In this document: positions 36,743 to 61,600 of the stretch, piece by piece
How the letters are laid out: each line of letters begins with the position of its first letter
Numbering within the stretch: the stretch's first letter is position 1
NCBI RefSeq assembly: GCF_902459465.1
Contig: NC_047083.1
Location: 124,001-188,000, forward strand
Length of the DNA: 64,000 nucleotides
Reading direction: 5' to 3'
Source of the DNA: Asterias rubens
Lineage: Eukaryota
Program-made: the position numbers and the translations under genes
Notes under the pieces: generated by a model
Database searches by the model: none
Seen by the model: only the letters and a program-made list of their open reading frames with translations
Told to the model about the DNA's origin: nothing

Positions 36743-38380
36743 ACCCCAAACAAATTATGAGTCCATTAATGACCACGTAAAAGAACAATACTGGTGGTCC
36801 TAGAAAAACATCAATTTAAAAACTCAAAACCATCACCCCACCCCCCTAACAAAAGTTATTAAATTTTTACAGAAGTTGAACACTTTATAATTGGCCCAAT
36901 ATATGGGTAGTTGAACACATTTTATCGCTTGAATTTCTAGTTCGTAATTATTTATCATCAGACATTTCAAGTTACTCTTCATAACGTTTTTGAAACAGAA
37001 TGTTTCATTGTTATCAGCGTTTGACACAGTTTAAGCCACAATTTGAGTATTTTACATGCCATTTCTTATTTATATTAGAGTAAAAATCATTAATTTTGAT
37101 TTCACGTCATTGATTCTGTCTCTTAATTTGAGTTTATCTATAAATTATGATACAAAAGACAAAACATTTTTAAATGTACATTCGGAGTCTACCAAGAAAA
37201 TAATTGTTCTAAATGCACTGCTTTATTTAGATCTTGCTTCTTAAGTACAATGGATTATAAAATTAAGCTTTGGTTTTAGTACAAAACAATACAAAACTAC
37301 AAAAATATTTATGAAAATATAAGAAATGTAATTAATGAAGCTTTAAAATCAGCAACATGCCTTAAACTTTTGAGACAACTATGTCCCAAGGAATTTCCCA
37401 AGGATTTTTGGAAATGGTCCAAATATGGCTTGTTCAAAGACTTTAATTTCAGGAATGCAGGTTTTAATAAGTTATATTTCTAGAAAGTTTAAACACAAGT
37501 AAAGTTGGATTTGTGAAATTATAGAGTTGATTTATCAAATAAAAAGTCAAGAGTTACTAAAGATCAAGTCTCGTCCACATCTTTTTAGCCAAATGCAGGG
37601 GAATAGAATATACATATGAAATATATTTTTCCATTATAAAAAAATGGAATGTTTTCACAAACTTTCATCTTTCAATAACATAGATAGCTTGTTGGTAGAG
37701 CACCGTGAATTCAAATCTAGTCTAGTAAATTTGTCTTTGTTCAACCCCAAATCTTTCAATAATTTCAAGAAAACTGCAAGATTTATGTTTTTTGCAAAAC
37801 TACCTAGCTCTCTAAAAAATAAAAACAACTTTGGTCCATTCTCAGCCGTTAAATCTATAAAGATTATAAGAAAAATATAGAGTTACATCAGGAACTAGAA
37901 AAATATTAGTTATCTCATAAGTGAGCATGCATTCCAGCAGATTTGCTCTGCTCACATCATACCAAATTAATTTCCAAGCAAATTTGATGCGTAGATTCCA
38001 AAATGCAAACCCACATCACATCAGCCATGTAAAATAGGTTAATATCTCACTCTGTTGCTATGGACCCACCAATCAGAATCAAGGATTCAAGTTTGCTGGC
38101 AGATAATATTGACTTTAGTACTTGATACTTCAAGTATGAGAAAAAGTATTTAAAAATCTAAAGTACATGATGCAGAGTAAATATCTAATAGTTCAAAGTC
38201 AAAGATCTCCGATTAAATATTTTGCATAAATCCAACAAATGACCAAAGACTCCTGGTAAAATAAGTTCAACTGATCAGCACAAATGCAAAACCTAGTGTT
38301 TAGTACCAGTAACTTAGTAAGATGATCTATTACAGTCACAGACTTCCTAACCAGACGCCTGTTCATTCTAAACCAATCAA

Positions 38381-41300
38381 TTATGGCCGAGCAGAAACAC
38401 CTTGTTGCAAGCTCTCTCGTTCCACTTTACGCTGATGTTGCTTGCAGTAAACCTTGCCATTAAACAAGGCATAGTTGGACAAACTGATGGAGAAAAATAA
38501 AGTAAAAAATGTTAAATCATACACCTCAGATTTAGTACCCTTAAAAGATTTTAAACGATTTAACCCAAGACTATTATATAACTCTTAAACAGGATGTTGA
38601 CATTGGTGTGGCAGAATAAGTTACTTAAACAATCAGAGATTTTTTGTTCCCCAACCATTTTTGAACAAATTATAATATAAAAAAAGCTCTAAATTCTCCC
38701 CTATTCTAGGCCATCAAAAAGTTGACTCAACAACTGTACCTTGTAACCTTCTTGCAGTGTTCACATTTGAAGCATTGCTTGTGGTATAACTTCTTAGCTA
38801 CTTCAAGACGTTCCAGAGTGTACACATTCTTGTTACAGATGATGCACTTATCATAAGCCGGTGCTTTCCAGGATGACTTTCCAGAAGACTGAGAAGAATC
38901 AAATTAAGACATAAGAAACTTGATTAATCTCCAAAAAGAAGAAATACATTGCTCACACAAGTTTAAAAAGCACCACAACTATCAAAAATTACAAAAGGCA
39001 GAAAAAATTAATAAAAACCATACACACCCAGACAGACCAGGTATATATAATTTTTAACTTTGATCAACATTTTTAAAATACACAATTATTAATGTTGTGG
39101 TTGTGACACAAAACCACAGCCCAAGAGATGCTGGCGGCAGAAGACATAACGATATTTTTTTTGAGACTCAGAGCGTGAGCCGGATGCTCAGTATTGCACG
39201 CATTGGTCTTAGCACACGCACAACTGGCGAGAACTGTGAAAACGGACCGCCCAAACGTCTCCAACTCTTCTGTAATAATTTAACGACCCTCACTCACCCT
39301 TTTGATGTCAGTCTGGTCCTCTCCATGTCCAATCTTTGTCTGGAACATATTTAGACGACCTTGAACTCCTCCGCTTGCTGCTATACCCTCATTACGCTCT
39401 TGTAAGAAAGACTTCTTCGCAGGCTAGAAACAAAAAACATTGAAAAACCATGTTAATCTTGAGAAAATCATAACACCAAATTTTAATTTTTACAAAAGAC
39501 TCCCTCACTGGCCGCCACTGTCGAGGTCAATCAATGGAAACGTACCATGTGTGTACAACTCTCAGCTAATGACAGGTGTTCCTTTGACCTTTGTGAGACA
39601 CTATTTGGGTTTGTGACATTACAATAATAAGAAGAAAAAGAAGAAGAAGAATACTTATAATGTCTAATAAATGTCAAACCTTGAGGCTCATGGCACGGAA
39701 AGAAACACAGACTTTAAAATAATAATAAAGCAATAATCCAAACAGCATAACAACTTTCAATACCAAAACAATATATAAAACTAAGCCAAACTACTCTTCT
39801 GGAAGAGATGGGTTTGGAGAGAAAGTTTATATGCAAGGAAGGAGTCTAATCCCAAAAATACCTTTTTGTCTTCAACAAAGAATCCTTTCTCCTTGATCTT
39901 GCTCACATGTCTACAAAGAAAACGAAAGCAAACATGAATTATTGGCACGATTATTTCAAATAATGTGACTACCAAATAACCAAGATCTACAAGTTAACTG
40001 TAAAATCGTAAAAATCTCAACATTACACTGTTTCTACTCACCCAGTATCTATGGTGATCACAATAGGCTTCTTGGGAGTACTGCAAAAAGATTAACAACA
40101 AACGTTTCAGGGTCTTAATTTTGGTGTAGTATAACCAGCTTTAATATTGTTTTCTTTACTGTGAGATCGCCTAACATCAAATGGCCAGATGGCCCTTTCA
40201 AGGTGAGAGCTTCATGTTACTGATTTGGGCTATATACCCAAATCAAACTTATGAGGCACACTTTATATACGTTTTATACACTTAATTTACAAATAAAATT
40301 GTTTCAACTGTTATTTTATTCATCTTCTAGTTTTCTCAGTCATTAACTATACTTACGCCACTTTACTCAAGTCGGCTATGCGTTGCTGCAACTCGACCAA
40401 CTAAAAACAAATTAAGAAAATTATCCTCATTAATATAAGACAGTTTGAGCCTAATTCCTCATAAATATTATCCAAGAGAAGTTGGAATTAGTGTCAAGCA
40501 TTCATCATCTCAGTCCCTTGAAAATTTTAGTTCAAATCAACAACATTTATTTCTATTTTACATTATATCTCATGTGCCGATATCATACAAAATAATGGTA
40601 TATAATAGTAGGAATAAGGCAGAGTTAGTGAAATGGAGACAAGCTTCGGTAATATACTCACATCATAATCTTGACGTTTTCTACGTTTCATCAAGTCAAA
40701 CTTTACTTCATATACTTCAACCAGCTTGGCCTAGAGAGAGGATAAATGCCAATACAGTATTAAATCAGTTCTTCATTATCATTCGCAACTTAAACTTCAA
40801 AAATGGATTTACTTCAAGGGAAGGAAATGGAAACAAGTTTATTATTTATAGTTAATTCCTATCATATTAACCACACCAGGCAAAGCTTTAAACACTACTT
40901 AATATACAGAGTGTTCCACGGTTGCCTTTACCTGAAGATTTAAGGCAAGTTCCTTGAGGCGTTCCATACTGGTATGAGAAGAGACGCTGAGGGGAGGGAC
41001 ACGTTCATCAAGAATCGTCTCCTTATGATAAGCAAGCTCCTCAGGTGTCATGTCTCGTTCCTTCTCAGCTTGGAAAATACTGTCCTGAAATATTCAACAA
41101 TTAAACATAGATTAAGAAATCCACCTCAGCTCAAACAAACCCTAAACTGTAAATAATTAGTTGAGGCCTGACGACAATTCAACTCTAACAGAGTCATGTT
41201 GTTGTTAAGCTTTCGAGAGAGACTCTGCTAGGGTCAAAACATCAGGCCATTAACTATTGTTGCATTTATACCATCTGGCTTTTTGTTGTATGTTGTTTGC

Positions 41301-43915
41301 AACAGCTAATTCTATTTTCTGTAAATAAATAATCATTTTAAAAGTAAATTTAGCTGAATGTTTGGAATTGAACAAAGTGTTTGTCCTTACCGAGATGCTG
41401 TACATGGGTTGAACATACTCCAAGGAATTCTGGATATTTCGACGTTTCTCCTCGGCTTCTTGACGACGTTTTTGAATCTCTTCACGAAGCTTCTTAGCAT
41501 CCTCCTTTAGTCAGAAATATAAAGTAAATCTTGATCAAGTCCAGATTCAAAGGAAAGAGTTCACCATGAGAATTAACAATAATATTAACTCAAGAAACAA
41601 ATAAGCACATCAACAGATAATTTAGACAGAGAAAGTTTTCTTATCTCACCGCTTCGCGAGCAAGTCTTTCTTCCTCCTCCTGTTTCTGACGCTGCTCGTC
41701 TTCTTCGTGTTTACGTCGACGACGCTCCTGAAAGAAAAACACACAGAAATCTTGTCTTAACTCTCAGACTTTACTCTTGTAACATTACAATTACAGGTAA
41801 CATCAGGGAGAACATTGATCAAGAAAATATAGTAGCAATCAGTATAAAAACAATAATTTTGAAACACATGATTGTTTTTATAAACTAAGAGTAAAAGATG
41901 AAAATCAAATGTTTATAAAAATAGCAACGCACCCTCCTTTCCTCAAGCTCTTGCCGTTCCAGTTCACCCTGCTGTCTACTCAAGCGAATTTCCTCCCTCT
42001 GTTCTCTGTAACGCTCTTCTTGTTCATGCTCACGTTTCAGACGAAGCTCCTGAAACATCGACAGTAAATCTCATCGATTTAAACTTAAATTTGAACATCA
42101 ATTCAAATTTGGTGATAAGTTTGACCTCCTGAAAATGAGTGTTTCAGTTTAGTTTTTTAAATAGTTTTTTACACAAAATTTGAGATAGTAATCCACTTTT
42201 TTAAATTGTCATATTCACCTCAGCTTTTCTTTCTGCTTCATTGATATCAGATTTATCATCTGACCTCTCAAGGGTGATCCTGAAGGAAAAAAAACAGAAA
42301 ATCATCAACTTGAATTTAATTGAAAAACAAACTTATTTACTATTAAACTCTGAATAATATCTTTCATTCTCACTAATGACTATTATTTATGTAACCAAGA
42401 TATTCCAACGAAAAAAACATTTCTGAAAGTAAAAGTAAAACTTACTCTGTCGTCCTTTTCTGGAATAAGAGAAGAAAGAAACAGAAACAAATTGTTAATT
42501 TCAAAACCTTTCAAAATGAAACAAAGAAGAGAGTAAATTTCTGTTTAAAACAAAATGTTTCATTCGTGTTGTTCAAAGCACATTTTCAGTTTCAAACACA
42601 CAGCTAATTTCGGCTATTGTAAAAGACCAGTGTTCACGCACTCATTGGGACCTTACATACAAAAACAACTTCTTTTTTTATTTGCAAATTTGATAAGTCA
42701 TCAGATTCAAAAGTAAATTGTGGAAAACCCCTGCTCACCACTGCTTTTGAAGGCTAATTCTTTCAATCTTTTCTCAAAATCTGACACATTTCGGGGCAAA
42801 GATTTTTCAACTAATTTTCACTATGATTATCTGAAAATTGCCTAATAACTGTGCACAAGATCAAAACTTATCAATGTTATGCATACCCTATAAAATTTAT
42901 TTCAAAGACATTTAAAGCAGCCTGCTTTCAAAGAAACAAGAGTTTATTTCTATTTTAAGGATGGGATGGGATAATTGATTGAACTGATAACAAATGATTT
43001 CAAATGTACAACTATTACTATCTAAGACTCCTCTAACACCACAAAACACTGCAAGAAATGCAAAATGTATAGATCTATAAACAACAACATTAAAAGCATC
43101 GGTAACTTCAACCAAAACATTTTTTGAAAAAGTGAATGGGAAAGACATCACAGTACTTAACCAGCTACACACGAAATATATTATGCATAAAAGAAAATGT
43201 GTGGAGTTTGTTAATAATGTTTGAGATGCACAAAAACGCGTCACTTTGAAAGAAATGTTTACAAGAAAACAATGTATTCCCAATGAAAATGTCTTGAAAT
43301 GCCACAATATTCAACTAAACACTCACTGTATGTGTTAGTATTAGTAATAAAAATGTTCGTGCAAAGTCTGAACTTTGACCTACAAGTTGACCCGAGTTTA
43401 CACTTCCAACTGAATTTTCTTCCTCCTCACTTGATTGGTCGCTATTCTGCTGACAAAGTAATGAACATTCATGATTTATAACTGGTTACATGTACATTAT
43501 GAGGGATATCAGAAACCTAACATTTTAAACTTCCAGTACATAAGCAGGCTTAAAAAAAGTGTTAACACTTCTTTGCCAACAATTTAACAACTAAGAAAAA
43601 AACAAATTCTCCAAACTTACCAACTTCACTTCCATTTCGGATCCATTTTGACGGGAACTATGATAAGAAGTTTTTATCACAGTCACATTCTCCTTTGAGG
43701 CAGCTCTTGAAAATTAAAAAAGGATTTTTTTTCTTCTTTTAAAAAAACACATTTGGATTTGTAACTTAACATTGAATTAATAACAAATCTGAAAAAGAAT
43801 TAATCATCACCATGGTAACCAATACTTACAATTCTCTATCGTCTTGTTCTTTTTCTTCCTGTCTCCGACGACGACGCTCCTCACGACGACGAGCACGTTC
43901 ATCATCAGCCATCAT
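38381..43915 (-). CDS. Troponin T-like protein with a C-terminal LIM domain, about 428 aa
   Basis: Exons 43830-43915, 43621-43705, 42446-42459, 42219-42279, 41933-42049, 41650-41727, 41391-41504, 40932-41084, 40662-40730, 40357-40400, 40042-40080, 39862-39910, 39298-39423, 38740-38888 and 38381-38483 (1287 nt). An E/R-rich helix leads into the TnT T2 core MTPEELAYHKETILDERVPPLSV...LKELALNLQAKLVEVYEVKFDLMKRRKRQDYDLVELQQRI. The LIM domain is CIICNKNVYTLERLEVAKKLYHKQCFKCEHCKKVTSLSNYALFNGKVYCKQH. Confidence 0.85.
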
Positions 43916-45333
43916 AATGTTTATTAACTAACGACCTGTTCAAATTATTAGAGGTAGAGTCATTCTTTGGATTTTGTCAAGACTAATTTGTAAACAACAT
44001 TATCATAAAGAATTTAATAACAGTCACCTGTGTGAGTTTCAGTTCAACACATCAACTCTTGTCTAGGCCTACTTGTTGAGAAAACAGCCAAAAATTGTAT
44101 ACAGAAAATTCCATGAAGCATGAAAACCAATATAAAGAATATATACAGTCAGACATCAATTATTGGGAGGGGGAGCAAGATACCTCCCTTAGTTACATAA
44201 ATAAGGACAGTTAAGATCCTCGCAATTAACACCCTTTGCTTTGCTATTAATATTAAACATACAGATGAAATGACAGGCAACAGCTTATGTCAACAATCCT
44301 TTCAACATCAATATGATAATCTGAAACACAGATATAATAATTAATAGTACATTAAATTATTAATAGGCCGATTTTAAATGTTATACTTTACATTTATGAT
44401 AAAACGGAGTTCCAAATGCGCATAATATTTCTGTCGTTAACTTTCAAAATCAAATAAAAATTTTAACAATCCCATATTATACAAAGTTTAAAAACTATTA
44501 ATTAATTATTAAAACGTATTTAATTTTAAACACTGTAGTGTAAAAATACTGAATAATTATCGATATATTGTTAAAAGAAACAGCCGTACCAACAATATGG
44601 AGCGGAAGCTTCACTTCTCAATCAATTTTAAATGCCTTTTGGGGGACAATTGAACCATTTCCGCACCACCCCAGACCTAGCCAGCTCGAATCTAATATAA
44701 TAAGTCCGAGCTTTCAGCCTTGTTTACAGTCCAACTTGCCCGCCGTGACGCGACGCCCACACACCGCGCACACCACCTGCCAGAAAGGGGTGCACTACGT
44801 CAAAAATACTCGTCAAAGGAAAGTGTTGGCATCAAAAGTTTCAGATTAACAATACCACAAATCATCCTAAATTTACAATACATCAACCAACTCACAACAT
44901 ATACCATTAAAACATGATGCATATTTACCTTAAAAGCTGTTTTCTGGGTTCAAATAAACTCGGAACTTTGCGAATCCACAAGTAGTCGCGAACTGTTTTC
45001 ACACAAATCTGGGTACTTCACACAATCACTGGTTCCATATCGATCGTGGAGTAATTCCCTTTGATTGGCGGACACCAGCTAGGATTCGTTTTATTGACAT
45101 TTCGTGTGTTGACCTCAAACAAACAAATACTTAGTGAACTTTACATTCCAGCTTTGTAAGGGACCGTATCAAAAGTTGCGTTCGTCTGTTTACTTATTGT
45201 GCTTATTGTAGGTCCAAAATTGTCACAAAAAGTAGTCACATTATTCAGTATCTCTGAAAAGAAAACTTGCTCGTTAGAATACACCAAATGAAATAATGAT
45301 GTACATAGCTATATATATGGTACAACCATACCG

Positions 45334-46950: not shown

Positions 46951-49900
46951 ATGGCAGCACCAGAAAGGTAAAAATAATAAAATAATTTGTATGAATATTT
47001 AAACAAAATTAATTATATTATTATGGTATTCAGGATTGGTACATGGATTTAACATAAAAATAATAGACAACATGTGATAATATATTTATGGGCTTCAACC
47101 GTCGACGTGTTATTCTAACGTCTAATAATAATTCTGAACTATTTCTTTTGATCCTATTAGTGAAGAGTCTGAAACCATGGCAGTAATTAAGGTAAGAACA
47201 AAAAGGACCTTGAATCTTTAATAACATTCACAATAAATATCATCGGAATCAAACGCTTTGCAAAATTTATTTACATCTAAATCATGCTAGGCCTACATCA
47301 CGATACTTTATCTAAGACGAACAGTTCCAAGAAGCGCTGGATATCACCTCTGAGAAATAAAGCTTTTGGACAAGAAGTTTTCTGAAAACTTCAAGAAATG
47401 AAGTGTGCTTGTTCACAATAAGGAATAGTTGTGATAACGTTATAACCCTCCTCTATGGTATCGCAACTAAATAAGGAACACTTTTTCGTGATAACAAAGA
47501 ATAGGACTATATTTTGTTTATACCGATGTGTATAAGCTCTGTATAACTGTTCATTGCTATTACATAATGTCTCGTGTAGGGTTAAAACTAGTTTATATCA
47601 TTTGTCCCCGATGCAAAAATAGATCCGAGAATAACATGACAATATCAACATAATTGTGAACCTTTTGGTGTTACCGCAAACCTTTCTATATCGTATTTCC
47701 ACCATGCAAAGTTTCAAACCCTACTAAACATTTTGTTTGTTTCTTTTTAATGTTAGGAAAGAGAAGAGAAAAGGAAAGAGGAGCTCAAGATGGAATTAAT
47801 TGAAGCTCGAGATGAGATTCGTAGAAAGAGTGAAGAAAAGGCGAAAGAACTTCAAGAACTTCGCGCTAAAAGGGTAAAGTTTAAATTACTCAAATCAAAG
47901 GAAGTGGATGACATAATGTAGTGGTGGATAGAACTGTCCACTGTTGATCAAGAAACCGCGCATGGTTGGCAAGAACCGCCGAATGTTATTTTAAACACTC
48001 GAAGTTTTAACAAAATTCAAGTATCTTCTGCAACATTTCAATTAAATAATACCCCCCCCCCCCCCATGATTGGCTGCTTTTGTTTCCAATAAAATTCAAC
48101 ACAACGTTTGAATATTATTGCGTAACATTGTTAGAAACAGTGCCTATTGCAGTTTATGGCTTTCCGTGTACAGATTTTGTCCAACCTCGCTTAGCAAAAC
48201 CTCGCCATGAATGCAATAGAAAGGACATCCATATGGACCGTAAAGGGGGTAACCCTGTTTCAGCCCCAGGAGAAGGTGGCAAAGACCCCTGGACAAAATT
48301 GTAGCCCACACCTAAGAGTGGCCTTCAGGCCTTCTGTCTGGCGACTTGCATACAAAAAACTCAGCGTAATGCCTATACAAATTATTTTAAATTGGTGCTT
48401 AATTTTCAAACTGTTATTTTTCTTGTCAGGATGCACGTCGTGCTCAGCAAGCTGAGGAACAAAAACTACGGGAACAATATGAAGCAGAGAGACGAGAAAA
48501 GGAGAAAGTAGAGAAACAAAAACGGAAGGAGATGTTAGAAATGAAGAAGAAGGAGAGAGAAGCTAGCCTCAAGGCAATGCACAATCCGGATGCTTATCAT
48601 GCCATCATTGTTGAGGCAAGTGCTATTTCATTGTTTCATCTGCATTTTTTAACGACACAAAAGGGGATCAGATTAAGATCACCAAATAGGATAGCCTCAT
48701 TGTCTAAATGTGTGCTCATACTATAAGAGTCAACGTGTCAATAAGTAACATTCAATATGATACAAATCTCACATTGGAACCCATTTTAATTTAAAACGAA
48801 GTTGACTTTGTTGTTGACTTTGTTGTAAACAAAAAGAGGGTATTTTTTAACTTTCTGTAGAAGGAAGAGCCGAAGAAAAAACCCAAGAAGTCCCAGGAAG
48901 AACTTGAGAAAGAGAAAGAGGCAGCGATGAGGGAACGGATCCAACCTCTATCAATCGGTAAATAAGAAACATGTTTTATTTTCACAACCAGTCAAAATTT
49001 GATTTAAGAAAATACAAGTTGTGTGAACAATCTTTAAAATGTAAAAAATCACCGTAAAACCCCCTCCCTATTACACCTTGTTCTTAAAAACCAAAATCTG
49101 AGATCTACAAGAAAGTAAAACTTCGGGGACAATTTGGTTTTACTCTTACACCGATGTGTGTAAGCATTGTATCCTTAGTATAGGCCGACCTTCCAATTTC
49201 TGTGAACTAAAACCACAGGCATTTACTCGGAGGAATTCGAACACACGACCTTCTTTATTGGCCGATTCTTAATCCCTGGGGCATTGTGCAAATTAAACAA
49301 TCATCTATTAAATTCGTCGACAATGATAACTGAATCTTAAACCATTTTTGAAAACCTTTATTCAGTTCAACCGACCTAAACCCGATTACTATAACCATTT
49401 ATGCTATTTAGGAGGAAGCACTGCTGAAGAGAAGATTCGTGAGATAGCACGCAACCTTCTTCAGAGACTGAGTAACATCTATGCTGATATCTTTGATATG
49501 AAATGTCGCAAGAAACGCCAGGTGTATGATGTAAGATATAAGTTTTAATAATTTAGCGTCAAAATCCGCCTTCAAAAAAAAAAACGCTCAAGGCGCTATA
49601 ACAGATTAAAATAAGAAAATCAAGGAAGGCAATAAACATATACCGAAGATATAAAACAATTACATCTAGTATTAATTATAAATGTTATGGACGTTTGGAT
49701 TTGGATTTCATTTACTAGAACAACATATATTGGTCAATTGACATCATCACCTCAATACATCTTGGTTGCTCCATTTTGGGCGTCAATTATTATATCCCCC
49801 GTGTAGGCCTATATGTTTTATATTCAGTGCTAATTTTAAGGTGACGCACTCGCGTTCACAGGCTCTTCATAATACTTGCAACATTTGACTCTCAAAATGG

Positions 49901-51591
49901 CATGCAAACCATGCATGCAGACAGTATAAACGCGCATGTGACGTCATACGAGGGGATCAAACGGATTTATTTCAAAAATAAATGACAAAATCAATCAATG
50001 GATATCATTGAGTAATTTGAGGTTTTTTTAATTTTATTTTCAGCATACTGAACTGCTTCAACGCATCGCAGATTTAACCAAGGTCAAAGAGTAAGTAGTA
50101 CTAGCTTGTATTTATTTCCATAAAATGTCGTTTTCCTCAATAATTTGTGGCATATTTCGTTCATTACAATTAAATGTTCTTATCGTTTTTGTTGTTGTTT
50201 TTATTCCTCCGCAGGCCACATTCTGCTGAGGCTGCTGGAACGTGAGTACACTAAGTGACAGTCGGTGACAACGACAATGACATTTTGTTGACAACACGAC
50301 AAGAAAACAAGTACCAAAAAAATGACAACACTTAAAGATTAATAAATAAATAAGAAATCATAATAGTCACGTGACATGGCGAAAGAATGACAGGGACACA
50401 AAGAAATATCAATGTATACGTTCTTGTTGACGTTCATATATTTTCACATCGTTTTTCAGTGTACACAAGTTCAAAGATGGAGGCGTATTCAAACCTCAGG
50501 TAAGAAACCATTCATGAATATTCACGACCCTTTCGCTACATGAAAACTGAAACTGGAAGTACAGCTTCTTAAAACTAAAAACGACAGAGTCCTATCTTGA
50601 CTTCCATTTTGTTTTGTTGGATTCTTAAATCCAGGAGCACGACCATAAGACGAAGATGCAGATGGACGCAGAAGCCGGTTCTATAATGTCTTCCGGTGGG
50701 GTCAAAGGTCGATCTGGGATGTTTGGGGGAGGCTCTGAGAAGAAAACCCCGGTAAGTCACGTGTTGTGTGATGAATAAAAACCAGCAAGAATCTAAGAAT
50801 GAATGAAGTCTCGAAATGATACCAAACTCTAAAAACTCCCAGGTCAGAATTGACTATGATTCCGGGTCCCATGGGGTCTGACCCATTTAAGGGTCAGTGT
50901 GACCCACAATCTGTGCCAATGAAACGTAGAAATGGGTCAAACTGATGCACAATCCAAGTTAACATCCCATTATTATTGTTAAATCGGTTTGGGTCAATCT
51001 GACCCAGAAATATTTCACGAGACCCTGACTCCAAGTCAATTCTGACCCGAGAGGTTTTTAGGGAGCTCAAAATGGCTGTGATTTTGATATTATGTAGGAT
51101 CAAAGCAAATTGAATCGTGCTCAACCAATAACTGTCAGATTTAATTGGAAGAAAAACTAGTTTTGTATGACTAATGTGCTGACGTCACAGGCATGACACC
51201 CGGCCCCGTTAATAGAAAGATCTCAAGACTAAAACATACTCTTCATTAATACCTATACCTGAGTGATATTATGAAGTATTAGATCAATGCAGAAGGTGTT
51301 AACAATTTAGCCAAATAATATTACGTTTATGGCAAACTGACATTAAACGCAACTCAAATAACTGTCCCGAGTCCGACTTGACCCCAGCAAGACAGACACG
51401 TACAAGACGAATGCGTTTCCCCCTTTTATGCTAACACTGTTAATGAAAAAAGGTTGAATAAAGAGGCATAAAAATGGCTCGAACACACAACAATTAGAAC
51501 TAAACAAGTAAAACCCTGCCATAACACGCGCTTAACAAGCATGTCAAATATTACCCATTCTTTATTTATACAGGAGGATGACGAAGGCTAA
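46951..51591 (+). CDS. Troponin T-like protein, 271 aa
   Basis: Exons 46951-46967, 47161-47191, 47757-47873, 48430-48615 (GC donor), 48861-48957, 49412-49530, 50044-50090, 50215-50241, 50460-50499, 50635-50751 and 51574-51591 (816 nt). The core KKSQEELEKEKEAAMRERIQPLSIGG..EEKIREIARNLLQRLSNIYADIFDMKCRKKRQVYDHTELLQRI matches the TnT pattern EEK..l..RI.PL.I....l.ekA.eL.......KyDl..r.kRQ.YDl.EL..R. Confidence 0.88.
50826..51065. mobile_element. MITE with about 30-bp TIRs, in the last TnT intron
   Basis: ACTCTAAAAACTCCCAGGTCAGAATTGACT at left vs AGTCAATTCTGACCCGAGAGGTTTTTAGGGAG at right, with internal GGGTCA/TGACCC repeats. Confidence 0.75.
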
Positions 51592-58624: not shown

Positions 58625-61600
58625 TCAAACCTGGTCAGTTTTGTCTTCTGATTTCTTCTCTACTTTCTTCAATGTTGGCTTCACACTGAAAATAAACATA
58701 CAAATCAAGAGTCAGGAATCATCTTACTCAGAACTTCAGACAATCTGATCTGATTGGCTGCATATTGCACCCCAGCACCTTGTAAACCATCACTTGGTGC
58801 TATTCGAATAAATCTGTCTCATACTTCAAAGAGACGCACCAAATATTTCAGTACAGACAGAATAGTTTGAGATAAAACTACTGAGAAGAATTGCTACTTA
58901 CAATCTACCCTTTATTTCCATTGCTCTTCTGTTCAGCTCGTCAATCTACAAAAATCATCACATCAAAAAAACACAACTGTTACACAAATGTAATATGAAT
59001 ACAAAATTCCTCAAAGCACTTGACAGCAAAATGAAAAGCATTAAGAAACAAAAACATAGAGTAACGAAGAACCAATCACTTTCAAATGTCTTACATCCAA
59101 ATCTTTATCTCGGACTTCAACTTCTAGATCATATTTATCACTTTCAGCTAGTACGAGTTGCTCATGAAGTCTTTCACAGAGTGCTTTAAGATCTCGTTGA
59201 CTCATGGAGTCTACATCGACCATCTTAACATTATCATTAATGAATTGAGATTTCTCAGCAGCAGTCTCTGTCTTTTCCTTCTGAAGGTCTTGACCAGCTT
59301 TCTTCATCATCATGGCCTAAAGACAGAGAAAACAAGTTTTTAATTTTAAAGTTATACACTGGGAAGAATTGGTTTGATCCACCCACCTACTTCACGTTTT
59401 GATTATTAAATATTGAATGGTGTTTTAATGTAATCTATACACGGAACAACAAAATATTGCTTCAAATATACCAGATATTTTAGATCAAAGGTTTTCAACA
59501 TCAGTAGTTTTCTGTGACTTTTCCTTTTAATCAGAGTAGAAATTGATGATCTTGGCGTCTTTTCACACTTACCTTGATATTCATCTTACGACCTGATTTC
59601 ATTTTGCCCATAAGTGACATTTTCTTCCCCTCAGCGGGTGGAGCCGCCGTTTCTCCATTCTCAGCGGGTGCAGCTGGTTTCTTCTTACGCTACAATCAAC
59701 AATAAAGTTATATTTATTTCATTTCTCTGACAGATTAAAAGTACAATATAGCACATTGGTAAAAGCATTAAAAGATACACTAGGCCTAATGAAATAATAA
59801 TAATCAGCTTTTATACAGCACCATTAACCCCCAAAAGGGTCCTGTGGTGCTTTACATAGGTTACAAATATTAAGCAAGTTAAGAAAATAATGAACAATTT
59901 AAGAAAAACAGATAAGAATGCATAAGAAAATTACAACTGACCAAAGACAATTTTTTTACAAATTTAAGTAACAACAATACTGGACAATTTAAGATAAACT
60001 GAGAACAATTCAAATACAGAGGAATGAAAGAGAACCAGCTTGAGCTTGAAGGATTGCCTAAAAGAAAAAAAATCATGTCTAGAGGCTCTCCTCTCAAGTT
60101 AACTTGAACTTCCTTGGATCATTCTACAGGAAATGCCATCTGTAAACCATCAAATTCACATACAATTCAATTCAATAAATTTATTATTAACATCACATTA
60201 AAATCTTATGATAAAAAAAACCAAGAAATATTTGTAAAATAGAAAAAAATAACTATAAAAATATAAACGGGACAAAATACACAGTGACAGAAATATTTAC
60301 AATTATACAATTATCTAAAAAATAACAAAAATTCTTATACAGTGCATGTTTGTACATAAAATACAGACTAAATGTCAATTCAAGTCAATTTTATATATTT
60401 TATCACAAGTTAAAAATGATCCAGAATGAACAACTTTTCACAGCAATTTAAGTAACTAAGATGGCAACCTTTGGGGTCTTCTTTCCTCACTAGAAATAAA
60501 CTTTAAAAACGACTCCAGCTACGATTAAATAATCTTACCTCTTCTTCCTCTCGTTTCTTTTTGCGATCAGCGTCGGCTTTTGCCTCAGCTTCCTTCCTTT
60601 TCCGTTCCTGAATAATAATAAAAATAAAAATAAACATAATAGTAAAGTATTTATAGAGAGCCCCACCCCAATCCAACACTAGTGGACACCATGGTGACAC
60701 CATGTTAGAAATCTCTTTTATGAGTAGTGGTTGCTCCGAGATCTCATAATATGACTTGTGAATAGAGAAAAGTAAATGTCTTACTTCACCAACGAGAGAC
60801 AATTGTGGTAAGAAAATGTTAGGACTAAGTAAGGTTTGTGGTGTTACCATGTTAGAAGAATCTTTTATGAGTAGTGGTTGCTCTGAGAGGAGACGGTTTC
60901 TGCTTGATGTTTTCAATTAGTTTGCTCTGACCCTCTCCTGGAGAGCACACTGACCAAAACATGGAGCAGTACAAACCGGCTCTTCTTAGAGCCATAATTA
61001 CTCACAAAAGAAATTCTACATGGTGTCACCTGAACCTGAACTAGCTGAACCTGAACCTGAACTGCAAACCTTACTCACAAAGTATGATCTTATTTAAAGG
61101 CAATTTATGCCTGTCCATAAGGGTACAAGTAACATTCCTTAAGAACAAGGGACTGCCCCGTTTTTTCCAGCGTGCCTATCCTGAAGTCTTAATCGCTCCT
61201 ACCTCATCTTGCTTGCGTTTCTTCTCCTCAGCTAGTCTCTGTCTTTCTTCTTCTTCTTCTTGTCTACGTCGTTCCTCTTCTTGAGCTGCTTCTTCTTGCT
61301 GTTGTTGCTCCTAATCAATCACAATGTCATTAAGAGGAAGGTGTAAGTGGAAACATTTAGTGGCAATGAAAACTTATTTGTTAGAAGTCCAAAGCAGCTT
61401 TCAAAAGCATTTTGAGAAACATTTCACTTCGAAGTAATGTGGTTATACATGTGAGATCAGTTTTAATACCCCAATATTTGACTCTGGGAAGCGTTATACT
61501 GCAGTAATGCTTCATGTAAGATCAGTTTTAATACCCCAATATTTGACTCTGGGAAGCGTTATACTGCAGTAATGCTTCATGTAAGATCAGTTTTAATACC

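Follow-up and report, generated by a model that had tools for sequence, protein, structure and literature searches.

A gene for a probable troponin-T-family protein ending in a LIM domain in Asterias rubens and other echinoderms

Does the sea star Asterias rubens make a troponin T that ends in a LIM domain? The question is raised by a minus-strand gene in a 64-kb window of its genome (contig NC_047083.1, positions 124,001 to 188,000; composition of animal DNA, about 36% G+C), in which exons for a helical core resembling troponin T (TnT) are followed by two exons encoding a LIM domain. An earlier note, made from the sequence alone, had joined the two parts at 38381-39423 into one product and knew of no troponin carrying a LIM domain. 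Here, one mRNA and one open reading frame were found to join the troponin-T-like part and the LIM. We consider it likely that this is a conserved echinoderm gene of 15 exons for a troponin-T-family protein that ends in one EPLIN/LIMD2-type LIM and would have a docking role at the thin filament.

Four RNA runs were mapped on positions 38200-44100 of the window. X1 and X2 are small sets of RNA-like contigs from organism A that contain every sampled word of the LIM exon, and X19 and X20 are raw RNA-seq runs from organism B, which bears the sister label. The predicted joint 38888 to 39298 was borne out by one contig in X1 (depth 35), one contig in X2 (depth 419) and raw reads in both other runs (3 in X19, 27 in X20). 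The joint 38483 to 38740 is present in the same X1 and X2 contigs and is spanned by 14 (X19) and 27 (X20) raw reads. One contig in X1 (2439 nt, starting from exon 1) and one in X2 (2062 nt) contain the upstream and troponin exons together with both LIM exons and the 3' untranslated region. All introns of the 15-exon transcript were seen as GT..AG joints in RNA contigs and reads, and the spliced mRNA holds a single long open reading frame of 428 codons, from the ATG at 43915 to the TAA at 38381. In the troponin-T-like transcript, the LIM exons are the normal last coding exons.

The details at the 3' end agree with what had been read from the sequence, and the earlier coordinates and reading frames for 38381-39423 were all correct, including the ligand spacing of the LIM. 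The exon at 39298-39423 on the minus strand has the acceptor tttctag at 39423 and the phase 0 donor AGG/GTGAGT after 39298, with the product PAKKSF...GGVQGRLNMFQTKIGHGEDQTDIKR. The acceptors of the LIM exons on the minus strand are tctcag at 38888 and catcag at 38483; the exon at 38740-38888 encodes SSGKSSWKAPAYDKCIICNK...CEHCKKVT, and a TAA stop at 38383-38381 ends the exon starting at 38483. The exons of the transcript, all on the minus strand, are as follows.

Exon 1, 43830..43937, minus strand: residues 1-29, with the ATG at 43915-43913; extent taken from RNA contig mapping, with 70 further X1 contig letters upstream unmapped.
Exon 2, 43621..43705, minus strand: residues 30-57; joint 43705 to 43830 in contigs and raw reads.
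Exon 3, 42446..42459, minus strand: 14-nt micro-exon, residues 58-62; clean AG/GT flanks, and 14 letters between the sides of the joint 42279 to 43621 in all four runs.
Exon 4, 42219..42279, minus strand: residues 63-82; RNA joints.
Exon 5, 41933..42049, minus strand: residues 83-121; start of the E/R-rich helical region, with alignments to cardiac TnT, including T1, beginning at about residue 102.
Exon 6, 41650..41727, minus strand: residues 122-147; RNA joints.
Exon 7, 41391..41504, minus strand: residues 148-185; RNA joints.
Exon 8, 40932..41084, minus strand: residues 186-236; beginning of the T2/IT-arm-like core (Pfam Troponin at 191-276, cardiac TnT in the PDB at 190-277).
Exon 9, 40662..40730, minus strand: residues 237-259; motif KFDLMKRRKRQDYD, the best tblastn piece to insect TnT.
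Exon 10, 40357..40400, minus strand: residues 260-274; RNA joints.
Exon 11, 40042..40080, minus strand: residues 275-287; in organism B the raw reads place the cut one base off and carry an additional letter.
Exon 12, 39862..39910, minus strand: residues 288-303; RNA joints.
Exon 13, 39298..39423, minus strand: residues 304-345; linker with the conserved GGVQGRLNMFQ; its donor is the branch point between the LIM form and a read-through ending in VSEGR*.
Exon 14, 38740..38888, minus strand: residues 346-395; first zinc finger and start of the second, with a Pfam LIM match (E = 1e-5) on the exon alone.
Exon 15, coding part, 38381..38483, minus strand: residues 395-428 and stop; rest of the LIM to H411 (38437-38435) and a 17-residue tail.
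Start of the 3' untranslated region, 38200..38380, minus strand: the X1 contig extends about 880 nt beyond 38200, the edge of the mapped stretch.

The protein assembled from these RNA joints is identical, letter for letter, to a RefSeq protein of 428 aa. A search with the LIM exon against 1.84 billion representative proteins returned mostly multi-LIM matches and one single-LIM match, the Acanthaster planci protein P0033 (79% identity), whose Pfam LIM and Troponin matches both exceed their cut-offs. Among the 150 LIM-exon matches listed it was also the only protein with a troponin core. Homologues were gathered by searches seeded from P0033; a word-based search with residues 195-428 found three sea star clusters only, and a profile search added a crinoid and a sea urchin. 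The proteins with the fused architecture, with their RefSeq names and identities to the A. rubens protein, are as follows.

Asterias rubens, XP_033645905.1 (P0166): trichohyalin-like.
Asterias amurensis, XP_071809444.1 (P0152): uncharacterized protein; 99.5% identity, 2 substitutions.
Patiria miniata, XP_038047763.1 (P0151): troponin T, cardiac muscle-like isoform X2; 69% identity.
Acanthaster planci, XP_022088333.1 (P0033): vicilin-like seed storage protein At2g18540 isoform X2; 62% identity.
Anneissia japonica, a crinoid, XP_033118876.1 (P0153): calponin homology domain-containing protein DDB_G0272472-like isoform X3; 37% identity.

The fused gene is thus already catalogued in RefSeq and UniProt in five echinoderm species by automatic annotation, and a precomputed Pfam table lists PF00412 together with PF00992 for the Acanthaster protein. 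The public names are inconsistent (trichohyalin-like, vicilin-like, troponin I-like and others) and mask the consistent architecture. In the literature searched, no paper was found describing a troponin plus LIM architecture in echinoderms. Inoue & Satoh (2018, PMC5888912) assigned two genes of Acanthaster to the TNNT orthogroup and do not mention a LIM in them. The earlier remark that no LIM-bearing troponin is known accordingly stands for this literature and fails for the databases. One condition named in the earlier note as speaking against the finding had two parts, prior cataloguing and prior characterisation, of which the former has occurred; the sequence is known to databases, and the architecture itself has not been noticed or characterised in any paper found.

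Residues 360-411 have the exact spacing C-x2-C-x17-H-x2-C-x2-C-x2-C-x17-C-x2-H, which falls exactly within the class pattern C-x2-C-x16-23-H-x2-C-x2-C-x2-C-x16-21-C-x2-(C/H/D). On the near-identical A. amurensis protein P0152, the Pfam LIM domain (PF00412) scores 34.3 bits (E = 2.9e-8, cut-off 22.9). Against solved LIM structures, phmmer gave EPLIN (2d8y) at E = 1.4e-16, CRP1 at 4.6e-16, LIMD2 at 4.3e-13 and a MICAL-type domain at 2.7e-9, and Foldseek ranked EPLIN, LIMD2 and NICAL/MICAL first to third. The nearest solved relatives by both sequence and fold therefore uphold the EPLIN/LIMD2/MICAL class proposed earlier, the boundary of the class being soft since CRP1 is equally close by sequence. 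EPLIN/LIMA1, LIMD2 and MICAL (2d8y, 2lzu, 2co8) share with the sea star protein the single LIM, the ligand spacing and the YCK.H ending; they differ in that the sea star LIM forms the C-terminal part of a protein resembling troponin. The usual segment after the LIM, F.QLFK.KGNYDEGFG, as found in P0040 and fish proteins, is replaced by QRKVERESLQQG in the sea star protein.

In an AlphaFold2 model of residues 160-428, the LIM was predicted with the expected hairpins and terminal helix (predicted local distance difference test, pLDDT, 72-83). Residues 279-356 were modelled at low confidence; this segment of about 80 residues is probably a disordered linker, and it bears a GGV.GR..MF motif. Exons 14 and 15 carry the sole LIM-like sequence in the window, and the best other LIM exon in the A. 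rubens genome is 43% identical, which rules out a recent capture of the LIM exons from a paralogue. The unrelated LIM proteins P0158, P0154 and P0160 have a short motif of the form GGVKSLAAKFG / IAAKFKG / SLKAKFES ahead of an EPLIN-type LIM, at a distance of a few to a few dozen residues. The arrangement is similar to the GGVQGRLNMFQ plus LIM of the sea star protein, and motif and LIM might travel as one module, yet LIM-less paralogues carry the motif too.

Single exons were too short for a useful Pfam result on the troponin part, and database copies of the full protein were used instead. Among solved structures in the PDB, residues 190-277 matched the T2/IT-arm helices of human cardiac TnT (E = 4.5e-5), and alignments to full-length cardiac TnT cover residues 102-277. 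The margin over troponin I (TnI) is small, the best TnI chain (E = 5e-4) being about ten-fold worse than TnT. For the tropomyosin-binding T1 region, the E/R-rich stretch gave only low-scoring alignments to residues 105-200 of cardiac TnT. A profile of the C-terminal 269 residues matched insect TnT at E = 3.7e-6 in a database of 5.8 billion proteins. The Pfam Troponin family (PF00992, cut-off 26.2) was less clear: P0152, two substitutions from the A. rubens protein, scored 23.2 bits (E = 8.8e-5), with the Acanthaster protein above the cut-off at 27.6 and the Patiria and crinoid proteins at 18.7 and 17.0. The assignment to TnT made in the earlier note is supported by the IT-arm and insect TnT alignments, and by Pfam the A. 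rubens gene belongs to the troponin family no more than marginally. A search of the animal's own genome with the core recovered only the gene itself at exon level, a plus-strand paralogue in the window being too diverged for such a search.

The order of the parts (E/R-rich helical N-terminal half, T2/IT-arm-like core, linker, LIM) is kept in the three other sea stars and the crinoid, so that the fusion was found in two sea star orders and one crinoid. The eight zinc ligands are invariant in an alignment of Asterias, Patiria, Acanthaster and the crinoid. Identities to the A. rubens protein were as follows.

LIM, residues 360-411: Patiria 90%, Acanthaster 77%, crinoid 46%.
T2 core, residues 186-276: Patiria 64%, Acanthaster 60%, crinoid 40%.

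No other segment of the protein is conserved as well as the LIM, and this is strong evidence of selection on the LIM as part of the TnT-LIM protein. The relative in the sea urchin Strongylocentrotus purpuratus, XP_030845403.1 (P0157, named protein MNN4), carries the linker motif GGVRGRLAMF, and its homologous core is 38% identical and scores 151 bits against the core profile. It differs in that a single 442-aa prediction holds two tandem TnT-like units, each ending near GG(V/I)..RL..(F/L), with no LIM in any isoform; neither tblastn nor a pattern search found a LIM exon in its locus (AAGJ06000018.1, 24403269-24436811) or within 10 kb on either side. The simplest reading of these sequences would be that the fusion is older than the crinoid-eleutherozoan split and was then lost in echinoids, on a sampling of sea stars, one crinoid and one sea urchin. 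Two marine or seawater metatranscriptomes, X13 and X14, contain the LIM exon at 1.00 and 0.64 of sampled words, which would fit planktonic larval expression or shed material.

Two further genes of the troponin superfamily lie in the window.

About 47757-50775, plus strand: a second TnT-like gene, LIM-less and arranged head-to-head with TnT-LIM; among its open pieces are KKKPKKSQEELEKEKEAAMRERIQPLSI and STAEEKIREIARNLLQRLSNIYADIFDMKCRKKRQVYD, and the tail, SSGGVKGRSGMFGGG, is similar to GGVQGRLNMFQ in exon 13.
59095-59316, minus strand: troponin I exon of 74 aa, ...LKALCERLHEQLVLAESDKYDLEVEVRDKDLD.
Within 58628-58711, minus strand: troponin I exon with KPTLKKV.

The troponin I exons lie about 15 kb from the 5' end of the TnT-LIM gene, which establishes linkage to TnI. 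By their predicted products, the TnT-LIM, TnT-like and TnI genes form a three-gene troponin cluster within about 20-21 kb. Vertebrates likewise show TNNI-TNNT linkage, with CALD1/LSP1/LAD1-type genes nearby (PMC9825255). Relative to human cardiac TnT (e.g. 8fmn_B, 1j1d_B, 8dd0_K), the sea star protein thus shares an E/R/K-rich helical body, a T2 region with the motif KFDL..K.KRQ.Y that can be aligned to the IT-arm helices, and linkage to troponin I as in the vertebrate pairs. The differences are the addition of about 150 residues (disordered linker and LIM) after the coiled coil, in place of the short basic C-terminus of vertebrate TnT, the marginal Pfam score and the reported absence of troponin C (TnC) from the phylum (PMC5888912, PMC5341096).

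A complex of the TnI exon with residues 186-290 was predicted with a score of 0.53 (best of three controls 0.00), a contact agreement between runs of at least 97% and a partner pLDDT of at least 74. Of 78 solved complexes, 51 also reached the mark that this prediction passed, as did 2 of 108 mismatches; passes at or below 0.60 came from only 5 of the 78 solved complexes and from all 4 passing mismatches, and at that level a pass is more often wrong than right unless the pairing was likely beforehand. The prediction weakly suggests that TnI pairs with the T2-like core.

The earlier note had also proposed two isoforms from the branch point at exon 13, the LIM form and one in which read-through of the donor encodes …DIKRVSEGR*. 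The LIM form is the one carried by the contigs and joint reads above. For the other there is some RNA: an X1 contig (depth 25.5) extends to about 39217, some 80 nt past the donor (39217-39297), and position 39222 is covered by 6 (X19) and 4 (X20) raw reads, with the deeper intron at 38988-39184 nearly empty. In X19, the 6 read-through reads and the 3 on the LIM joint together approximate the upstream joints (about 11), whereas in X20 the LIM joint, with 27 reads, is dominant, so that the ratio of the two forms may vary between samples. No AATAAA was seen in the read-through stretch, and no LIM-less isoform was found among the annotated proteins, 13 of 13 isoforms in the five species carrying the LIM. 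A LIM-less read-through product may possibly be made, at a sample-dependent level. RNA was also found in all four runs over 38889 to about 38935, directly 5' of the exon 14 acceptor (depth 21 in X1 and 156 in X2, with 8-9 raw reads); together with that at 39217-39297 it points to further transcript forms. Since the LIM exons lack an in-frame ATG and the extension at 38889 to about 38935 has a stop in their frame, 5 codons upstream of exon 14, it cannot encode a LIM-only protein from an AUG.

These transcripts bear on whether the locus might instead hold two genes, a troponin-T-like gene ending in VSEGR* and a downstream small LIMD2-like gene, with the joined RNA an occasional conjoined read-through. 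Such an arrangement would account for the RNA past the donor, for the 3 reads on the exon 13-14 joint in X19 against 14 on the exon 14-15 joint, and for the RNA at 38889 to about 38935, which hints at transcripts entering the LIM exons another way. It is hard to reconcile with LIM exons that lack a start codon and follow a stop, with a joined form that makes the major contig in both X1 and X2 and 27 joint reads in X20, and with a joined architecture and conserved linker kept in every annotated isoform of five species, over an estimated half a billion years or so; nor was the LIM captured recently, as its best genome paralogue shows. We regard two separate genes as extremely unlikely.

For the single fused gene, a function can be proposed by analogy with what is known of the two families. 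The helical half would lie along tropomyosin and actin, as in TnT, and the neighbouring troponin I would be the partner of the T2-like helices. Towards the C-terminus, a flexible linker would hold out the LIM as a zinc-dependent module for docking other proteins, by which the thin-filament complex could be tied to another cytoskeletal or adhesion partner; the known partners of this class of LIM include SEPT9 for EPLIN (PMC11077590). Several observations weigh against a troponin of this kind. Besides the sub-threshold Pfam score, the passing complex prediction is possibly a memory of the solved troponin core, and tropomyosin-binding sites are poorly conserved in ambulacrarian TNNT-group genes, whose function was left open (PMC5888912). 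The sea urchin relative indicates that at least one class can do without the LIM, and in echinoderms classical biochemistry found no control other than myosin-linked control (PMC2226187).

The main rival is a caldesmon/LSP1/EPLIN-like actin side-binder of smooth or non-muscle cells, descended from the TnT/TnI/caldesmon superfamily and not a working troponin subunit; in it, binding or bundling of F-actin would fall to the helical half and linker, and recruitment of partners to the LIM, as in EPLIN. The Pfam Caldesmon family (PF02029) matches P0152 at E = 9.1e-5 and P0033 at 0.0022, and a shark lsp1a protein was matched at E = 1.2e-7. The sub-threshold Troponin score of P0152 also fits such a protein, as do the CALD1/LSP1/LAD1-type genes contained in vertebrate TNNI-TNNT clusters (PMC9825255) and the mostly smooth-like muscle of echinoderms (PMC5888912), and the LIM-less TnT-like gene in the window could then be the true TnT. 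However, the Caldesmon match in P0152 is confined to the E/R/K-rich helix (residues 63-172) and reaches 21.8 bits, far under the cut-off of 50, and the likeness of GGVQGRLNMFQTK to caldesmon/LSP1 motifs around ..N.WE.K was not significant by BLAST against one LSP1 sequence. The T2 core aligns specifically to TnT IT-arm helices and insect TnT, and the complex prediction with TnI gave a weakly positive result. On this evidence a side-binder of this kind is possible, if doubtful. The strain sensing proposed in the earlier note is a different use of the LIM: many LIM proteins associate with stressed actin, and TnT would put the LIM directly on the filament. Recruitment to strain sites requires at least three tandem LIMs with linkers of 7-8 residues, however, and single zyxin LIMs are not recruited (10.1101/2020.03.06.980649). 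The sea star protein has one LIM, of the EPLIN/LIMD2 class, and strain sensing is therefore disfavoured and very improbable. Ambulacrarian genomes are reported to lack troponin C (PMC5888912, PMC5341096), and a more far-reaching proposal, which we think unlikely, is that in a complex of TnI and TnT-LIM the LIM and the conserved GGV.GR..MF linker replace TnC as the regulatory or anchoring input, the cluster being an early state of the locus. In that case the LIM could dock, for example, an adhesion or dense-body partner or a calmodulin-type sensor.

Two side observations concern the transcript itself. In A. amurensis, the annotated isoform X2 is 16 residues shorter than isoform X1, so N-terminal exons are probably alternatively used. 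An intronic repeat at 41155-41351 is present in high copy. Its RNA and contig depth is 20-50 times that of the adjoining exons and reaches about 5000 in X2; variant letters are numerous, there are loose ends on either side, and 41215/41295 is a joint of the 'opposite strands' kind. This combination suggests a short inverted-repeat element, similar to a miniature inverted-repeat transposable element (MITE), transcribed from many loci.

The existence of a working troponin system in echinoderms and hemichordates has been a matter of dispute since the 1970s (PMC2226187, PMC5341096, PMC5888912), and troponin I is essential in sea urchin larval muscle (PMC5341096). If a LIM did take the place of TnC, the TnT-LIM/TnT-like/TnI cluster would preserve an early state of the vertebrate locus of TNNI, TNNT and CALD1/LSP1/LAD1-type genes. 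As a probable troponin-T-family protein with a docking LIM, TnT-LIM would join a regulator of the thin filament to a cytoskeletal docking module in a naturally occurring fusion. It bears on the unsettled question of thin-filament regulation in Ambulacraria, and its strongly conserved terminal LIM offers a concrete, testable handle on the role of the echinoderm TnT-group proteins.

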